Below, in pieces: positions 53,939 to 61,709 of a stretch of DNA of 64,000 nt. The position numbers and the translations under genes are program-made. The DNA is from Paraphysomonas bandaiensis (Eukaryota; Protista; Chrysophyceae), in assembly GCA_965644295.1 (NCBI GenBank), contig CBFFRP010000096.1, positions 81,344 through 145,343 on the forward strand, in the 5' to 3' direction. Each line of letters begins with the position of its first letter. Within the stretch, counting starts at the first letter, position 1. A model generated the notes under the pieces. The model was not told where the DNA came from and ran no database searches. It worked only from the letters and a program-made list of their open reading frames with translations.

Positions 53939-55292
53939 GTGTTTATATCAGTTCATATGAGTGTCTGTTAATATACACATACACACCCCTCTCATACATA
54001 CGTATATACATACTAGCGCATAGGGTTCGATCCTATACGCTGTTTGGTACTGTGTTTCAACTTCGTGATGTGGTTTAGTGGGTGTTTACATGCATATATG
54101 TATGTATGTGTATATGTATGTGTGTGTTAAATGAAGTGTGTGAATGAAGTGATAGTATACAGAAGTATATATATGTACGTGTATCTTCATATGTTATCAA
54201 CAGTGTACTGCTGTATTCTGTATATATAGGAGTATAGCTGTTATTGTTATTATATATACAGTTGTAATACTGTCCTGGACTACAGTTCACTGAAACGGTT
54301 AAGTGCTGTAGTGTGCTCAGTATACAGCAGTATACAGCGTGTACCTCGTCTAGACAGCAGAGGTATATGTACAGCAATACATACAGTATTGGTGTGTACA
54401 GCAGTACGGTATATGTGTGTATAGCAGTACGGTATGTGTGTGTATAGCAGTACGGTATATGTGTGGTGTGTTATATACCGCAGGGACGTGGCGGTTGGAT
54501 TGACTCATCTTGTATATCTTTGCACAGCACAGACGTCTCATTATTATATAAATGAGATATCTTACGTTCTTCTCTTATCGATGGAAGAGTGGTTATTTCT
54601 ATGATCGAGATACACTCTTTCAACTTGCTAACTGTATATGTATCGGCTCCGTACATGTATGACTGATGCTTATACAGCTGTTATGATTATACGAGGATGT
54701 GATGCTTCATAATGCTTATCTAAAGAACTACACTTGTACTTCTCAGTTCATAATAAAATATAACTACTGACATTTCATGGCGTTAACTAAGACAGAATTT
54801 CACGCTTCAACAACTGCAGAATTTCGGTATCTACTTTACATATTGTATTGTCAATGCGATTTAGCTGCATATATAATACATGGTATAATTATCTAGCACA
54901 TAAGCGATATATACGTTGTGCATTAAGAAACCATCTCGGATAGACAAAGAGAACAGAACCTAGTCCGCATGAATGCACGTTATTGTCGAGTGTTATAACT
55001 CATGATAGTTATTGCGTATTCCAGTTAAGCTGTAGCTGTTATCTTCGTAGTGGGGGAATCGTGCAATTGTACATCAGTCAGATAGTTACTTTTGCATGTG
55101 AAAATAATTATTCTAGTTACGACAATGTTGCCGGTGACGCATACATTCATTCGAACAGCATGGACAATGTACAACACCATCCACTATGTTAATGTTCATG
55201 AAATAAACAAGTGTTAATATGTTCAACATAGTCAGTTAACATGAAAAATTAAGCCACATAAAGCTGCTGATCACTCACACGGTGTTTTAGGT

Positions 55293-58200
55293 CTACTCTT
55301 CGCCATACGAATATATAAAGCTCCATAACATATCAGGTACCTTAGACATCTTCCCCGACCTTGAAATCTCATCTATATTGAACTCTCTGGCTAGGTTGTA
55401 CTTCCAGTTATCACTAAAGCATTCCAAAGTCATGAGAGTACTGCGTAATAAGTTTGCCGCAGCTTCTCTTTTTTCACTCAGGGAAGATACGTCCTCATCA
55501 ATCGAACTTTCGCTGTCATCAACATGCAAAGCAAAAGCGGCGAAATACTTTTCCGCCACTTGTAAGGAGCCTTTAGACCATGGGCCTCTGGCATTGTTTA
55601 GCACTATCTTAAATGCTACATCTGCAGTTGCTCGCTGCAACGCATTAAACGCCTTGCCTTCAATGCTGTTTAGCATTTCAGGTGACATGACGAAAGCACA
55701 CAAATCATCTACCATTGATTCTATGCGGGACACACCCTCGCCAAAGAAGCTCTGCACTGCGCGGTATCCTGGAAATGCATTCCCGAATTGTTGCGGCATA
55801 CGCAAAATTGAAGGAATATTAGAGGGACGAATTTTATGCAGAACGTAGTACATCCATGTTTTCGCCTTGCAATAAACATACTGATTAGGATTTCCAAATG
55901 CAGTCATTCTGTTATAGACAACAAATCCCTCCGCATCCGGAAGAACCGCCCTATCCATGTCCAAATTCGCTGGGGGAAAGATCTCAAAGAAATCGGACCA
56001 AGTGCAATCCCCTCCAAATACTCTTGCCAAGTCTCTGAGAGCTTGTCGTGTCTCACCAACGCTGCGCATCCTCCAGAACGTTGGCTCATAAAACGGGTGC
56101 GACGGAATATCAAAGTGAGGTGTCCATACAAGATGTCCATCAGGAGTTGTCACAGAGCACCCCAGATAAGACAAGCCACATTGATCTTCAACATAGCTAC
56201 ACGCCAGCTCAGTATGAGGCTTTAAGTCGAATGCACACATGCGATTCGGTCCACCTATAGCTTCCCATGCGTGCATCTCGACGCTGGAGAGCTTACCAGC
56301 AATACTGGCAATATCATGGATGAAAGCATCCAGCAGTGACATACTACACAAGGTTTCTGATGTTCCAAAGCGACGAGGGGGGACTTGAATTGAAAGAAGT
56401 TCCGACGGAGAAAGACCGGATTTCGAAGCCTTCAACAACTCTGTGTGTGTAATGTTATAAGATAGTGCCATCGAGCAGGCCATCCAGTACTGAATATTTC
56501 GCTGCGTCAGCATTGCAGTTCCATTGGAAGCGGGAATCAGCAAACCACCTCGCAGGACTCGACGCGAACTATGGATAAATGCACTCACAAAATCATCTGA
56601 TACATACTTTGCAGCTGACTGCCAAAAACTACATTCTGGGGTCCCCGCTGCCATAAACATTACTCTGAAACACATCCCGTCACGCTTTGAGCTACATACG
56701 CATTCATCGATCCCAAGAGCTGCTTCCTCGTCGCCCTGCATCGCACGTATCGACAACTGATAATGTGTAGCAAAGTGAGAAATATCTTCCTCGCTATTAA
56801 CGTTAAGATCTTGGAGATCAGTGATACCGTGCTCTTTGTCACCAGCAATCTCTGGCCCGCGTGGCATGGCCGATACAACTCGCCATTCATCTCGAACTAG
56901 CAAACACACAGGGGAGCGCGACTGGATATTCCATGGGGCTGTCCACTGACGATTTACTCCATCCTTGTACTTAATGATCATACAGCTGTTCGCCAGCCTC
57001 TCGAGCTGAGCAACACGCTGTTCCCAGTCATGAAGTGAAACTTCAGAAATATCCACAGATGAAGGTACTGAGTATCCTGGAGCAATGCGCGAGAAATATT
57101 CTGTAGCTAGTGCCACATCTCCCACTTTCACTGCAAGAGCATAGCTTGCGATACGGTGCAGGGAACTAAACGGAAAACTTACAGTATACTGGTTCGCGTT
57201 AAACCACTCCTTCAGCGATTTGGACACCTCCTCCTGAGTTTGAAATCGGGCAGATAACTCCCGCTGTAACGTATTCAGTAGCTGGGGCATGTTCATATCC
57301 TCATATAAAGAATTTCCATTATCCGAAATGTTAAACTCAGGTACGCTGCGGAAGCATTGAGCAATTTCAGTGGACAAGAACTGCAAGAAAAGATTTGGCA
57401 ATTCCTGACCTCTCCTGGAAAGGGTAGTGGCAGTACAAGTCAGGTGGGGGCATTGAGTCGACAGGTATTTCTCCGGGAATTCTGATGCCCATACAGGACG
57501 GAGGGAGGTTAGGGTAGAAAAGCGAGTTCCTTTCATTTGACTGGAGAAGGGGTGAAGTATACTGAAGGGGCCAGAAGTTGCCACCTGCCGCTCATATGTC
57601 ATGTCATGCCGAGCACAATCACTATCCTGCAAAAGGGCTGGTCGCACAGGATATATATGCACCCGTAAGGCGTCTACAGCAGCAGGAGGCATAATCTGTG
57701 AGCGGGCCCCAGCGTAGAAGGTCTGCATTGTGTCAAACAGCACGACCTGACCGTGAAGTAGGAGCTTGTTCGCCTGTTGGCACATTTGCGAAGAAACTTT
57801 AGACTTTACCCCGCCGGACTTTACACCCTGTTCTTTCTCGCGTGATGCAATTTCTTGAACACATTCGTAGGCCTCTTTATACGACACATCTTCTTGCCGC
57901 TTACCCAAAAGAGCTGCACCGGTACTATGTATAAACACATCGCGCTGTAGGTGGTGAATACATCCCGAAGGTACCCCAAGTGACTCCATCTGAGCGCGCA
58001 GAAGGGACGCTGTATAGCTCTTACCACATGCTGACGTCCCCATTAAAACGATGAGTATCCCTTTGAGCGGCCGACCACCCAGCTCCCCACATTTCATTAG
58101 ATCTAACGCTCATTAGTCAAATACATTTGAATTATATAAGTACCTGCGAGTCCTACACCAGTAGATGCCAGGGCTTCAACTTTCTCACGCGCTCTCTCAT

Positions 58201-59017
58201 CGTCGCCAAAACATACCGTATCACTCTTCACATTTTGCATGCGTACAGCTCCCGCCGAGTCCGCCTGAGCAAGATCGTAGAGGCTCATCCGCAAGCCACG
58301 AGGCAAAGTGGCTAATAAACGTGAGGTAAGTGGATGTGGAGCGCGATTGGGTCCACACATATGATACAAGACAGTATCGCACATGAGATCCCATTCCTCC
58401 GCAGTGAACCAAGGGAGGTAATGTGCACCCCACATATGCCGTAGCGTAATGCTTCCAACAATGCAGTGGCAAGGAAAACCAACTGTACCTGACTTTGAAA
58501 CTGTGCGTGTGTTCCCCTTCCCGATATCATGAAATAACGCGCACACGCCCTTCTGAAATAGTTGATACTCTGTGAATTCGTGATGGCGTGATAGAATTCG
58601 AAACATTGCCATGCACCCATGAGTGAAACAATCTTCCAGATGGAAAGGGCATCCGCTATGAATATGTTCCTTTGCAGAGAGGGCCAGTATTTCAGCAGCA
58701 GATGTTTCATACTCACACTCCGTCGTACCATCCGATTCTTTTGCCATAAATCTGACAGATAGAAACACATCCAGACTCATAAAATACGCCTCAATTGCAG
58801 GACACCACTCGACAGTGGGAGAGAGAGGATCAAGGTCGTGTATGAGTGACTGTATGGAGGTAAACAGAGTCTGTATAGAGGGACTGTTAAAGGGCGATAG
58901 AGACGAGAACAGATCCCTTGTTAAACCAGCGGCTGTTTTGGATAGGTCAAAGGAGTGCTGGTCCACTCCATCCAGTCCGGAAATATCCGGATATTCGCAC
59001 ATGGGTATCATAACCAT
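55293..59017 (-). CDS. Putative trifunctional RNA repair enzyme: HD phosphoesterase + P-loop polynucleotide kinase + Rnl1-type RNA ligase; 1227 aa; exons 59017-58144 and 58102-55293
   Basis: A 41-nt GT-AG intron joins the 304-aa and 934-aa ORFs in frame (GLA-D-LMKCGE). HD: PFHLED..TH, ALFHDIGK, FPCH, YHM, QADSAG. Kinase: LMGTSACGKS, LQRD, VLFDT. Ligase: SKRDG (I), WEAIGGPNR (III), DAEGFVV (IV), CKAKTWMYYVLH (V). Confidence 0.8.
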
Positions 59018-59646
59018 GTATTTAATATTATCTTATCTATACACTGCTATCTATAGAGAGATATGGATGTATACTGCTGTGTATACTGCGCTGTATGCTG
59101 CTGTGTATAGTGCTGATGTCTAGATGTGGCTCCTGGAGATAGTTATACACTTCACAAGGAAAATGCGAGAAATATCCTACAGGATAATACCCTCATATCC
59201 CTGTACACTACACTGCTGCTGGTACACACGAAGTCTAGAAGTGGTATCGGCATCCTTTGTATATTTTTGTTCAAAGATGCCTCTAATATTGAGACAACAA
59301 TTATCTGTATACCAGCCGTAGTTGTATTGAAGTAATATAGAGGATATTAGCTTCTATTTATTTCCGAAAAATATGATGCGATACATGGTCAGTCACTACA
59401 TACAGCAGGACCAGACATTGATATCCCATATATGGGATATTATTTTTCGGGGAAATATATTTATGGCCAAATGGGTGAGTGGGAGAGTGGCTGTGAATGG
59501 CGGTGAGTGGGGTGCTTGTTGTTCTATATATAGAATGATCCACACACCTTCATAGTACACGACTCGACATACATATCCAGGCAGTGATCTCGATTGGATT
59601 ATACTAACATCTCTACATATTGAAAGTCTTCATATCTATCATTGTG

Positions 59647-61709
59647 ATGTCATCTTCATCTGGACTTGTGGAGTATAATCACTTAACATCTGAAGGAGAT
59701 GTAGAGCTTGGCATATCAAACGGGAACGACGACGAGGCTAATCTACAGGCTCCTGGATCAATGAATGGAGCCAATAATAAAAGCTTAAGATTCTCTGGAG
59801 GGGGAATGAAAGAAGCTGTACTTGCATGGAATAAACTTGAGAAGTTTGTGGATAGTGATGGTGCTAAAGGTGATAAGAAGCAAATATTGTTTGGTGTGAG
59901 TGGGATAGCTCGACCAGGTGAAATGATTGCCTTAATGGGTCCAAGTGGAAGTGGGTAAGATAGAAGTTATATATGTTTATATTCTATTTTAATTTTATAT
60001 TAGAAAAACAACATTGCTGAATGTTCTTGGCGGTCGAGGACGGGCGAACCTCAAGGGTACAGTGTACATTAACAACGAGCCATTTAAAAAGTCGATGAGA
60101 AGAAATGTAGCATATGTGTTACAAGAGGACATTTTCTATACTGAGCTTACTGTTCGGCAGCAACTAACTATTACATCTCATCTCCGCCTACCTGACTCTG
60201 TTTCAAGAGAGGAAAAGCGTGAAACAGTTGAACATGTCATCAAAACCCTACGCATCGAGAAGTGTGCGGACACAAGCATCCTCTTAATATCTGGAGGAGA
60301 GAAGAAGAGGTGTAATATTGGTACGGAATTGCTTACTAACCCCAGTATCCTTCTGTTGGACGAGCCAACTTCGGGGCTCGACAGCACTGCTGCGCACTCG
60401 CTTATAGATACCATGCGCTTCATGGCATCTGAGCGGATGACTATCATATCTTCCATCCATCAGCCTTCTTCCAAGGTGTTTTATGCATTCACCAAGTTAA
60501 TTTTGCTTGCTGATGGGCATGTAGTATATAACGGCCCACCCACCAAGTGCTTGGCACATCTAGCAACACTCCAGCTTGTTCCTCCTGCAGAGTACAACCC
60601 GGCTGATTATGTTATGGATCTAGTGAATGACACAGAGTCTGTGGAGGGGACCAAATCTGTTCGCACTCGCATGATAGAGGGATGGGACGCTACTGCGACT
60701 GAGCAAGAGGTTGAGACCAGTTTGGGTGGGTCACACGTGGATGCAGGAGATGGTGATGATAGCGATGACGGTGACGGAATGGGCAGTACAACGAAGTACC
60801 CATCCAGTTATGCCACGCAGTTCATAACCCTTTTCGGTCGGGCTCTTGTAGTATCAAAACAAAAGTCGATGACTAATTTGCAAATTTACCAGACTATTGG
60901 TCTTGCCTTAATATGTGGCTTCTGTTGGTTTGACATGGACTACAGTGAAAAACGTGTTGACGATCGCACTGGTTTCATATTTTTCTTCATGACTTTCTGG
61001 TTTTTCATGACCCTATTCCAAGGAATGATGCAATTTCTTCCAGAGCGTACAATTATTCTCAAAGAGCGGGCTGCAGGATCTTATCGACTGTCAGCGTATT
61101 ACCTGTCTAAGTCCATGTCTGAGCTTCCTGTACGACTTTTTCTACCGTTCGTCTTCTTGCTGATATCATTCCCAATGGCCTCTCTCTCTCCCTCAATAGT
61201 GGTCTTTATTCAGGTAGTTGGTGTGCAGCTTCTGGCAGCTCTAGCCGGGGAGTCGATTGGTGTGTTCGTTGGGACCACTACTCTGGACTATGGTATGTGA
61301 ACATTGTTGTGGATTAATATCTCTGTTAATATTAATTGTCATTGTAGAGAAAGCGATGGTGACTGCCACTCTTACCTCTATGGCCCTCATGCTTACTGGT
61401 GGATACTTCGTTCAGAATCTGGAGGAATTTGTAAAGTGGGTACGCTACTTTTCACCATTCTCGTACAGTTATAATGCCTGTCTTCGACTGGTATTTGATC
61501 GTGACATCCCCTGTGATGATGGCTCTGTGTTTGCTGAATGCGCTGTCCCTGGAGTTAAGTCAGTTCACCCATCGGTTGTATTTGACTATGTGGGACAAGA
61601 GAATAGCGTTTCCTATAATGTTGGGCTATTGGTAGTATTCATTGTGTTCTTTCGTATTGCGGCCTACCTTACTCTTAGATTTGTCCCGCACAACAACGGG
61701 AGGAAGTAG
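59647..61709 (+). CDS. ABCG (White-family) half transporter, 3 exons
   Basis: NBD-TMD order; Walker A GPSGSG|KTT split by an intron; ISGGEKKR signature; LLLDEPTSGLDS; SSIHQPS; NPAD; KERAAGSY; multiple TM helices. Confidence 0.95.

Follow-up and report, generated by a model that had tools for sequence, protein, structure and literature searches.

Gene structure and transcripts

The window analysed here, a stretch of 64,000 nucleotides of the chrysophyte Paraphysomonas bandaiensis (contig CBFFRP010000096.1, positions 81,344 to 145,343), carries on its minus strand a gene in which a putative HD phosphoesterase, a P-loop domain resembling polynucleotide kinase (Pnk) and a predicted RNA ligase of the T4 Rnl1 type follow each other in a single chain. 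We consider its product, with a probability of about 0.75, to be a stand-alone RNA break repair enzyme that is shared between giant viruses and protists. The parts of the gene are given below; residue numbers restart with each exon, with the HD domain in exon 1 and both kinase and ligase in exon 2 (K471 of exon 2 is K764 of the full chain), and all searches and structure models were likewise performed exon by exon.

55293..59017, minus strand: whole gene, two exons, 1227 codons plus stop (open reading frames, GT..AG borders, spliced contigs, frame arithmetic)
58144..59017, minus strand: exon 1, residues 1-291 and the first base of codon 292; ATG at 59017
58103..58143, minus strand: spliceosomal intron of 41 nt, GT..AG (spliced junction in runs X5, X1 and X9)
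55293..58102, minus strand: exon 2, 2810 nt including the stop at 55293-55295
55100..55292, minus strand: 3' untranslated region, at least 193 nt (transcript contigs reach the edge of the examined stretch)
58238..58690, minus strand: predicted HD phosphohydrolase core, exon-1 residues ~110-260 (conserved ligands, profile match to 3wfo, TIGR02692/HDIG, Pfam HD in relatives)
58517-58534, minus strand: FHDIGK (H163-D164)
57342..58076, minus strand: predicted P-loop kinase domain, exon-2 residues 8-252
58017-58040, minus strand: P-loop GTSACGKS
57936-57947, minus strand: R52-D53
57729-57740, minus strand: D122 (LFDT)
Within 57342..58076, minus strand: kinase residues R152 and R163
55824..57293, minus strand: predicted Rnl1-type adenylyltransferase domain, exon-2 residues 269-758, with large insertions
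56676-56690, minus strand: ligase motif I, K471-x-D473-G474
Minus strand: ligase motif III, E612; motif IV, E723-G724; motif V, K744/K746; and Y377, R394, R413-G414-x-E416
55296..55823, minus strand: all-helical C-terminal domain, exon-2 residues 759-934 (secondary structure of the model, alignment ranges)

At first sight the gene looks like two open reading frames on the minus strand, one of 304 residues (58103..59017) and one of 934 residues (55293..58097), because the unspliced exon 1 reads 13 more codons into the intron and there meets a TAG. The interval between the frames, 58143..58103, is bordered by GT and AG, and the minus strand reads ...CTCGCAG/GTACTTATA...GCGTTAG/ATCTAATG... across it. 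Its removal joins exon 1 (874 nt) and exon 2 (2810 nt) in frame into 1228 codons including the stop, i.e., a protein of 1227 residues.

Logan contigs from four sequencing runs (X1, X2, X5 and X9) were aligned to positions 55100-59300. In contigs of three of the four, 58102 is joined directly to 58144, skipping exactly 41 nt (CT..AC on the plus strand), while the X2 contigs have loose ends at both splice sites with letters that agree with the opposite exon. X5, a polyA marine metatranscriptome, and X9, a cDNA marine metatranscriptome, are both on record as RNA; the RNA status of X1, which may be DNA, is a guess, and this run contains a single contig of 3882 nt that comprises 55100-58102 and 58144-59009 and thus the entire coding region in spliced form. 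Contigs that include those of both metatranscriptomes thus lack the intron, in agreement with the in-frame junction proposed in the preliminary description, and the spliced contigs rule out two separate genes. Coverage by contigs ends near 59025-59047 and falls to zero at 59048-59188, which places the start of the transcript just upstream of the ATG at 59017, bearing in mind that assembled contigs give neither expression levels nor exact ends and that an RNA library alone is no proof of transcription.

The contigs of X1 and X2 share about 12 single-base differences from the window within 55133-58931 (for example 55724 T>C, 57353 A>C and 58580 G>A), while those of the polyA metatranscriptome X5 match it exactly. 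This pattern points to strain-level variation.

Domain order and conservation

The motifs expected of the three domains occur in a fixed order along the chain. Exon 1 contains HIHSG/PFHLED, FHDIGK, FPCHC, LYHMCG and AQADSAG, followed in exon 2 by the kinase motifs GTSACGKS (residue 20), QRDV (51) and LFDT (120) and the ligase motifs IIKYKDG (374), SRSPV (393), SKRDG (470), WEAIGG (611), EGFVV (723) and KAKTW..YYVLHK (744-755). Over 89-112 homologues the catalytic positions vary little or not at all, and homologues score E = 0; a motif set of this kind is beyond chance. All catalytic residues are retained, which rules out a pseudoenzyme.

A word-indexed search with exon 2 retrieved 14 relatives of 34-51% identity, five of which are 1167-1238 residues long. 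The N-terminal parts of these long homologues align with exon 1 and run uninterrupted from the HD motifs to the P-loop, and the spliced junction of the window (..LA/D L MKCGE..) sits in their linker L-x-x-[FL]-M-x-x-x-x-L-x-G-[VI]-[YL]-I. Because uninterrupted homologues align across the junction, the comparison of sequences identifies the HD-kinase-ligase fusion as ancestral. In such homologues the HD ligands H133, H163-D164, H184, H219 and D253 are likewise conserved, with the kinase directly after them.

The preliminary description had read from the letters an N-terminal HD metal-binding set, a Pnk-type P-loop with a downstream RD, and a C-terminal ligase resembling T4 Rnl1. Each motif that it listed is found in the order given, and the three assignments hold up under several methods: NCBIfam, Pfam HD in relatives, ESM features and the profile match to 3wfo agree on the HD domain, the alignment with T4 PseT and the conserved K26 and D53 speak for the kinase, and Foldseek, VIA-align and ESM Atlas all place the ligase fold with T4 Rnl1 and the ligase domain of Trl1 (Trl1-LIG).

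In the HD domain, H133, H163, K167, H184 and H219 are invariant among 89 sequences, and H120, C123, H126, E128, D164 and D253 are nearly so. This corresponds to the H..HD..H..H..D ligand pattern of HD phosphohydrolases, to which an additional H/C/H/E cluster is added. Pfam HD matches the window only weakly (E 0.03) and 13 of 40 relatives (best 8.5e-7); NCBIfam matches the region to the HD part of CCA tRNA nucleotidyltransferase (TIGR02692) and to HDIG, and HD clusters make up 26 of the 30 matches found with ESM features. Searched against the PDB, the family profile retrieved the HD domain of the Aquifex class-II CCA-family enzyme 3wfo (E 2.2e-6) with HD, H, H and D aligned. The HD domain of the CCA-adding enzyme of E. 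coli has 2',3'-cyclic phosphodiesterase and phosphatase activities.

The kinase domain shows the same kind of constraint (G25, K26 and D53 invariant; G20, S22, R52, Y73, D122, R152 and Q171 nearly so, 104 sequences). Pfam AAA_33, the family that holds the Pnk-type kinases, matches 23 of 40 relatives (best 3.3e-10). In hhalign, the family profile pairs GxxGSGKST..RD with residues 4-44 of T4 PseT (86% probability, E 4.7e-6), a segment that includes the catalytic Asp35 of T4 Pnk. The AlphaFold model of exon-2 residues 1-265 (pLDDT 90.7) consists of one kinase domain throughout residues 8-252, which excludes a hidden fourth domain. Foldseek alone ranks generic P-loop kinases first, and in the structure comparison PSTK (12.6), CthPnkp (10.4), Pnkp1 (10.1) and T4 Pnk (10.1) are all among the top nine, with PFK-2, adenylate kinase and APS kinase scoring within about 1-2 Z. 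The model thus places the domain in the Pnk/PSTK/Kti12 group of P-loop folds. The catalytic residues are laid out as in Pnk, but the fold ranking alone is no proof of a polynucleotide substrate.

In the ligase half, Y377, E416, K471, D473, G474, E612, P672, E723, G724, K744, K746, Y751 and H754 are invariant in 112 sequences, and the ligase motifs I (KxDG), III (E), IV (EG) and V (KxK) are conserved in the correct order. An AlphaFold model of exon-2 residues 262-934, built with 112 aligned relatives, reached a pLDDT of 95.6 and a pTM of 0.93. Its top eight Foldseek matches in the PDB are all Trl1 ligase domains or T4 Rnl1 (probability 0.96-1.0). The VIA-align scores are 15.3 for T4 Rnl1 (root mean square deviation 3.4 over 242 residues, T4 residues 0-254) and 15.2-15.3 for Trl1-LIG, followed after a clear drop by Rnl3 (11.4), Rnl2 and REL1 (9-10), the Pnkp ligase (7-8) and DNA ligases (about 6.5). 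ESM features point to PF09511 clusters (score 0.95), and a PF09511 cluster ranked first in the ESM Atlas shape search. The C-terminal half is accordingly modelled as a covalent nucleotidyltransferase fold whose nearest relatives are T4 Rnl1 and Trl1-LIG.

The predicted adenylyltransferase domain comprises about 490 residues versus 254 in T4 and must therefore contain large insertions. The helical domain at 759-934 has a position like that of the C-terminal domains of Rnl1 and Trl1-LIG, yet does not align to them. Rnl1 enzymes have a specific N-terminal segment with an upstream essential arginine (R54 in T4); the structural alignment starts at residue 0 of T4 Rnl1 and residue 8 of the model, and hhalign pairs the region of the nearly invariant R394 with the T4 'CRG', at a probability of 0.8%.

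Distribution of the family

HMMER, run exhaustively against 1.84 billion representatives clustered at 50% identity, retrieved 517 clusters at E <= 1e-3, 409 at E <= 1e-10 and 225 at E <= 1e-30. Most of the matches are 1000-1300 residues long and cover both the N-terminal (HD and kinase) and the C-terminal part of the profile. As judged from these matches, the HD-kinase-ligase order is common to a family of at least 517 clusters. The architecture that the preliminary description had called unfamiliar is indeed undescribed in the literature searched, but this protist is not alone in having it.

Most members come from giant-virus-like (Imitervirales/Klosneuvirinae) DNA, with others in a few protist genomes; the term 'giant-virus-like' refers here to gene content and to three named matches in BFVD, not to hallmark genes beside the homologues. 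Long contigs place five homologues in densely packed, intronless and AT-rich surroundings (25-38% GC). Their neighbours include a eukaryote-type topoisomerase IB, DUF5847, DUF4116, prolyl-tRNA synthetase and a translation GTPase, and further XRN, ankyrin arrays, SNF2 helicases and RNase H; Acanthamoeba polyphaga mimivirus encodes a homologue of the DUF5847 neighbour. The search of BFVD with the ligase model retrieved three viral proteins at E ~1e-24 with a query TM of 0.66-0.71, values that refer to the ligase half only: A0A3G4ZR63 of Dasosvirus (1315 residues, annotated as 'Flap endonuclease 1'), A0A1V0SII7 of Klosneuvirus KNV1 (1039 residues, uncharacterised) and A0A3G5A8M5 of Hyperionvirus (1086 residues, 'HD domain-containing protein'). 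The family therefore has members in Klosneuvirinae, and the three proteins probably share the whole HD-kinase-ligase architecture, since one of them is annotated as containing an HD domain. With lengths of 1039-1315 residues and a ligase half alike in predicted structure, they are close counterparts of the protein described here; they are viral, intronless and uncharacterised, while the gene in the window is an intron-bearing host gene. Scans of IMG/VR with the family alignment or with single relatives returned no locus, and the early-promoter octamer of Mimiviridae is not enriched on the virus-like contigs and was not used as evidence. A match to phrog_6931, which covers HD and P-loop in one relative, was dropped as a marker of HD-Pnk after it had matched 10 of 14 control genomes.

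On two of the virus-like contigs the DUF5847 gene adjoins the fusion gene or lies at most 4 kb from it (L001:2472-3629 and L007:5679-6905), and a third DUF5847 relative, P0299, occurs on a contig of 9645 nt, which is also the length of the contig bearing P0015. The proximity of both genes may reflect conserved synteny or a functional link. The virus-like contig of P0151 carries a separate gene of the PNK3P type (polynucleotide kinase 3'-phosphatase) 4 kb upstream (L015:4687-5904), and genes for SNase and RNase H adjoin the fusion gene, so that the region looks like a local grouping of genes for nucleic-acid end processing.

In Paraphysomonas the gene is single-copy in an assembly of 62.6 Mb and lies beside an intron-split ABCG transporter and IQ/B-box proteins; these host-type neighbours rule out a viral island. 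Other eukaryotic homologues are P0012, a protein of Chromera velia, and P0004, which is found among fragmented host-type genes (globin, GDA1/CD39, MARCHF6, NUDIX). On the latter contig, the call of 868 residues begins inside the kinase domain, and open reading frames of 385 and 95 residues lie directly upstream on the same strand (L012:3044-4485). Here, too, the HD domain and the start of the kinase are probably on separate exons.

In a FastTree phylogeny of the ligase region, with context labels on only six of its leaves, the window sequence forms a group with P0003, P0004 and P0005 (support 99), which is nested inside a clade of 20 leaves (99) that also holds P0007 and P0016, both from a viral context, and has the Chromera protein on another branch. 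A single-copy, intron-bearing gene in a host setting that belongs to a virus-centred family would therefore have been exchanged between giant viruses and their hosts. We regard such exchange as likely, in either direction and in one or more events. Of the earlier suggestion of a viral or bacterial acquisition, the viral link thus stands, with virus-like contigs and Klosneuvirinae as its basis.

Proposed mechanism and alternative explanations

While the gene structure, the spliced junction in contigs, the three folds or superfamilies, the conserved catalytic residues and the distribution of the family are established by the data, the activities of the enzyme, its substrate among RNAs (tRNA or rRNA) and its role in biology are our inference. 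RNA breaks would be healed and sealed in three steps. The N-terminal HD domain, as a metal-dependent phosphoesterase, would open and remove a 2',3'-cyclic phosphate or a 3'-phosphate to leave a 3'-OH. The central kinase would then phosphorylate the 5'-OH, presumably by means of the P-loop lysine, the aspartate of the RD motif after strand 2, the Walker-B-like D-T and the lid arginines. Lastly, the ATP-dependent ligase of the Rnl1 clade would join the ends, with ligase-(Lys471)-AMP and AppRNA as intermediates. The HD phosphoesterase is expected to leave ends with 2'-OH and 3'-OH and Tpt1 is not found in the genome, so the junction should be a clean 3'-5' phosphodiester as made by T4 Rnl1 and unlike that of Trl1. 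In viruses, the enzyme would likely reverse RNA-cleaving defences of the host, in the manner in which T4 Pnk and Rnl1 reverse the action of PrrC. In the protist host, the repair of stress- or conflict-induced RNA breaks would be its most plausible role, in preference to routine tRNA splicing, because RtcB is present.

Several observations weigh against an RNA repair ligase. PF09511 is matched neither by the window protein nor by 40 relatives in Pfam, the ligase region of the window pieces and of relatives retrieves nothing from Pfam, NCBIfam or PHROGs, and neither phmmer nor a profile hmmsearch against the PDB matches the domain. Likewise, hhalign of the family profiles against T4 RnlA is not significant, and the Foldseek E-values to ligases in the PDB are only 1.6e-3 to 2.7e-2. 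The ligase assignment is therefore one of predicted structure together with motif conservation. In the genome, PF09511, PF08302 and PF08303 have no match either, but the controls for these models were silent, which makes this weak evidence of absence. Finally, the bacterial HD-Pnk also acts on DNA ends, and a DNA substrate is possible.

The last point leads to a different explanation, in which the protein repairs the ends of DNA strand breaks, or of breaks in both DNA and RNA, with a ligase that seals nicks in DNA or RNA:DNA hybrids. The order of HD and kinase is that of the bacterial HD-Pnk, which heals ends of DNA and RNA and is clustered with a ligase (PMC6097658). HD-Pnk reportedly aids radiation resistance in Deinococcus, and the relative P0151 lies among genes for SNF2 helicases, RNase H, SNase and PNK3P. 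We nevertheless consider a DNA repair enzyme improbable. Slightly more improbable is a housekeeping ligase for the splicing of tRNA or for unconventional mRNA splicing, which would replace or back up RtcB as an analogue of Trl1 in which an HD domain takes the part of the 2H cyclic phosphodiesterase. The domain content would be functionally equivalent to that of Trl1, the ligase ties structurally with Trl1-LIG, and the gene is apparently expressed both in culture and in the sea. However, RtcB is encoded in the same genome, the patchy and virus-centred distribution is unlike that of an essential housekeeping enzyme, and Tpt1 (PF01885), which a Trl1-type junction with its 2'-phosphate requires, has no match in the genome although control genomes were positive. 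The check for RtcB and Trl1 proposed in the preliminary description thus resulted in the presence of RtcB, with the parts of Trl1 and Tpt1 not detected and the Trl1-family controls silent.

It is also conceivable that all three domains are genuine without acting together in the repair of breaks. The kinase might then phosphorylate a small molecule or, like PSTK, a group attached to tRNA, and the nucleotidyltransferase might adenylylate a target other than RNA 5' ends. This would have to be reconciled with the occurrence of exactly three repair activities in one order in hundreds of clusters, with the aligned RD motif of the Pnk type and with a full set of ligase motifs including the lysines of motif V, and it appears to us the least probable of these alternatives. 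A stand-alone RNA break repair enzyme is the explanation that we prefer. A more far-reaching version of it, which we put forward as tentative and rather doubtful, would have hundreds of giant-virus lineages using the enzyme against ribotoxin-type cuts in tRNA or rRNA by their hosts, some of which, this protist included, would have captured it for their own use, and would make the ligase a new and highly divergent branch within the Rnl1 clade, invisible to current sequence models.

Relation to known repair systems

RNA heal-and-seal combinations known so far comprise T4 Pnk with Rnl1, Trl1, the baculovirus Pnk/Rnl and the bacterial Pnkp/Hen1. T4 Pnk and Rnl1 are two proteins, in contrast to the single chain observed here; T4 Pnk processes 3' ends with a HAD/DxDxT phosphatase in place of an HD domain, and the ligase domain of T4 Rnl1 is about half as long as its counterpart here, which has insertions and lacks a match to PF09511. 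The Trl1 of fungi and plants is likewise a single chain with modules for ligation, kinase activity and 3'-end healing, and its ligase structures 9qw7, 6n0t, 6n0v and 8rbj tie as the best matches to the ligase model. Its order, however, is ligase-kinase-cyclic phosphodiesterase versus HD-kinase-ligase, and its 2H cyclic phosphodiesterase contrasts with the metal-dependent HD domain. A junction with a 2'-phosphate as in Trl1 is unlikely, because Tpt1 was not detected. The Pnkp of Clostridium thermocellum and Pnkp1 of Capnocytophaga, from bacterial Pnkp/Hen1 repair, are also among the closest known systems.

As described, the bacterial HD-Pnk of the Runella slithyformis cluster has an HD phosphoesterase followed by a P-loop 5'-OH kinase, as is the case here, but its functionally linked ATP-dependent ligase is a separate, overlapping open reading frame and not fused to the C-terminus; this ligase self-adenylylates and has no known substrate (PMC6097658). 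The RNA repair modules of jumbo phages have been reviewed, with HD-like phosphatases touched on in passing (PMC7824862), and RNA ligase is a recognised gene group of giant viruses (PMC6401483). Full-text literature searches, whose coverage did not extend to Munir and Shuman 2017 and the survey of Burroughs and Aravind 2016, returned no description of an HD-kinase-Rnl1 fusion, and the domain order is undescribed among characterised RNA repair enzymes in the literature searched.

The fusion thus unites in one chain an HD-kinase pair and a predicted Rnl1-clade ligase, where bacteria have only a neighbouring ligase gene, and supports the idea that HD-Pnk and ligase work together. Although widespread in giant-virus-like DNA and present in several protists, it lacks an annotation or carries a wrong one. 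Structure prediction detects a ligase domain that Pfam and other HMM searches miss. We interpret the distribution as suggestive of defence and counter-defence based on RNA breaks in giant-virus infections of protists, for which the gene provides a concrete enzyme for testing. If this is true, RNA cleavage would be a principal battleground of protists and giant viruses, and the enzyme a eukaryotic-virus counterpart of T4 Pnk and Rnl1 versus PrrC. A compact, all-in-one RNA repair ligase is also a possible reagent.

Neighbouring and related genes

RtcB is represented by two loci in the assembly, G000:C281:480143-481225 (L002:1492-2694) and G000:C535:19744-20403. One is an uninterrupted open reading frame of 400 residues whose best relatives are only about 60% identical; the other is in pieces, which are probably exons. 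The two loci may be of different origin.

The ABCG-type transporter (ABC_tran and ABC2_membrane) occupies 59620-61709 of the window on the plus strand. It is split over at least three open reading frames and therefore has several short introns, versus one intron in the repair gene. The stretch at 59020-59120, just upstream of the ATG of the repair gene, consists of an imperfectly repeated word similar to CAGCAGTATACA followed by an AT-rich part. It is probably a promoter region common to the repair gene and the divergent ABCG gene, because positions 59048-59188 are without a transcript contig.

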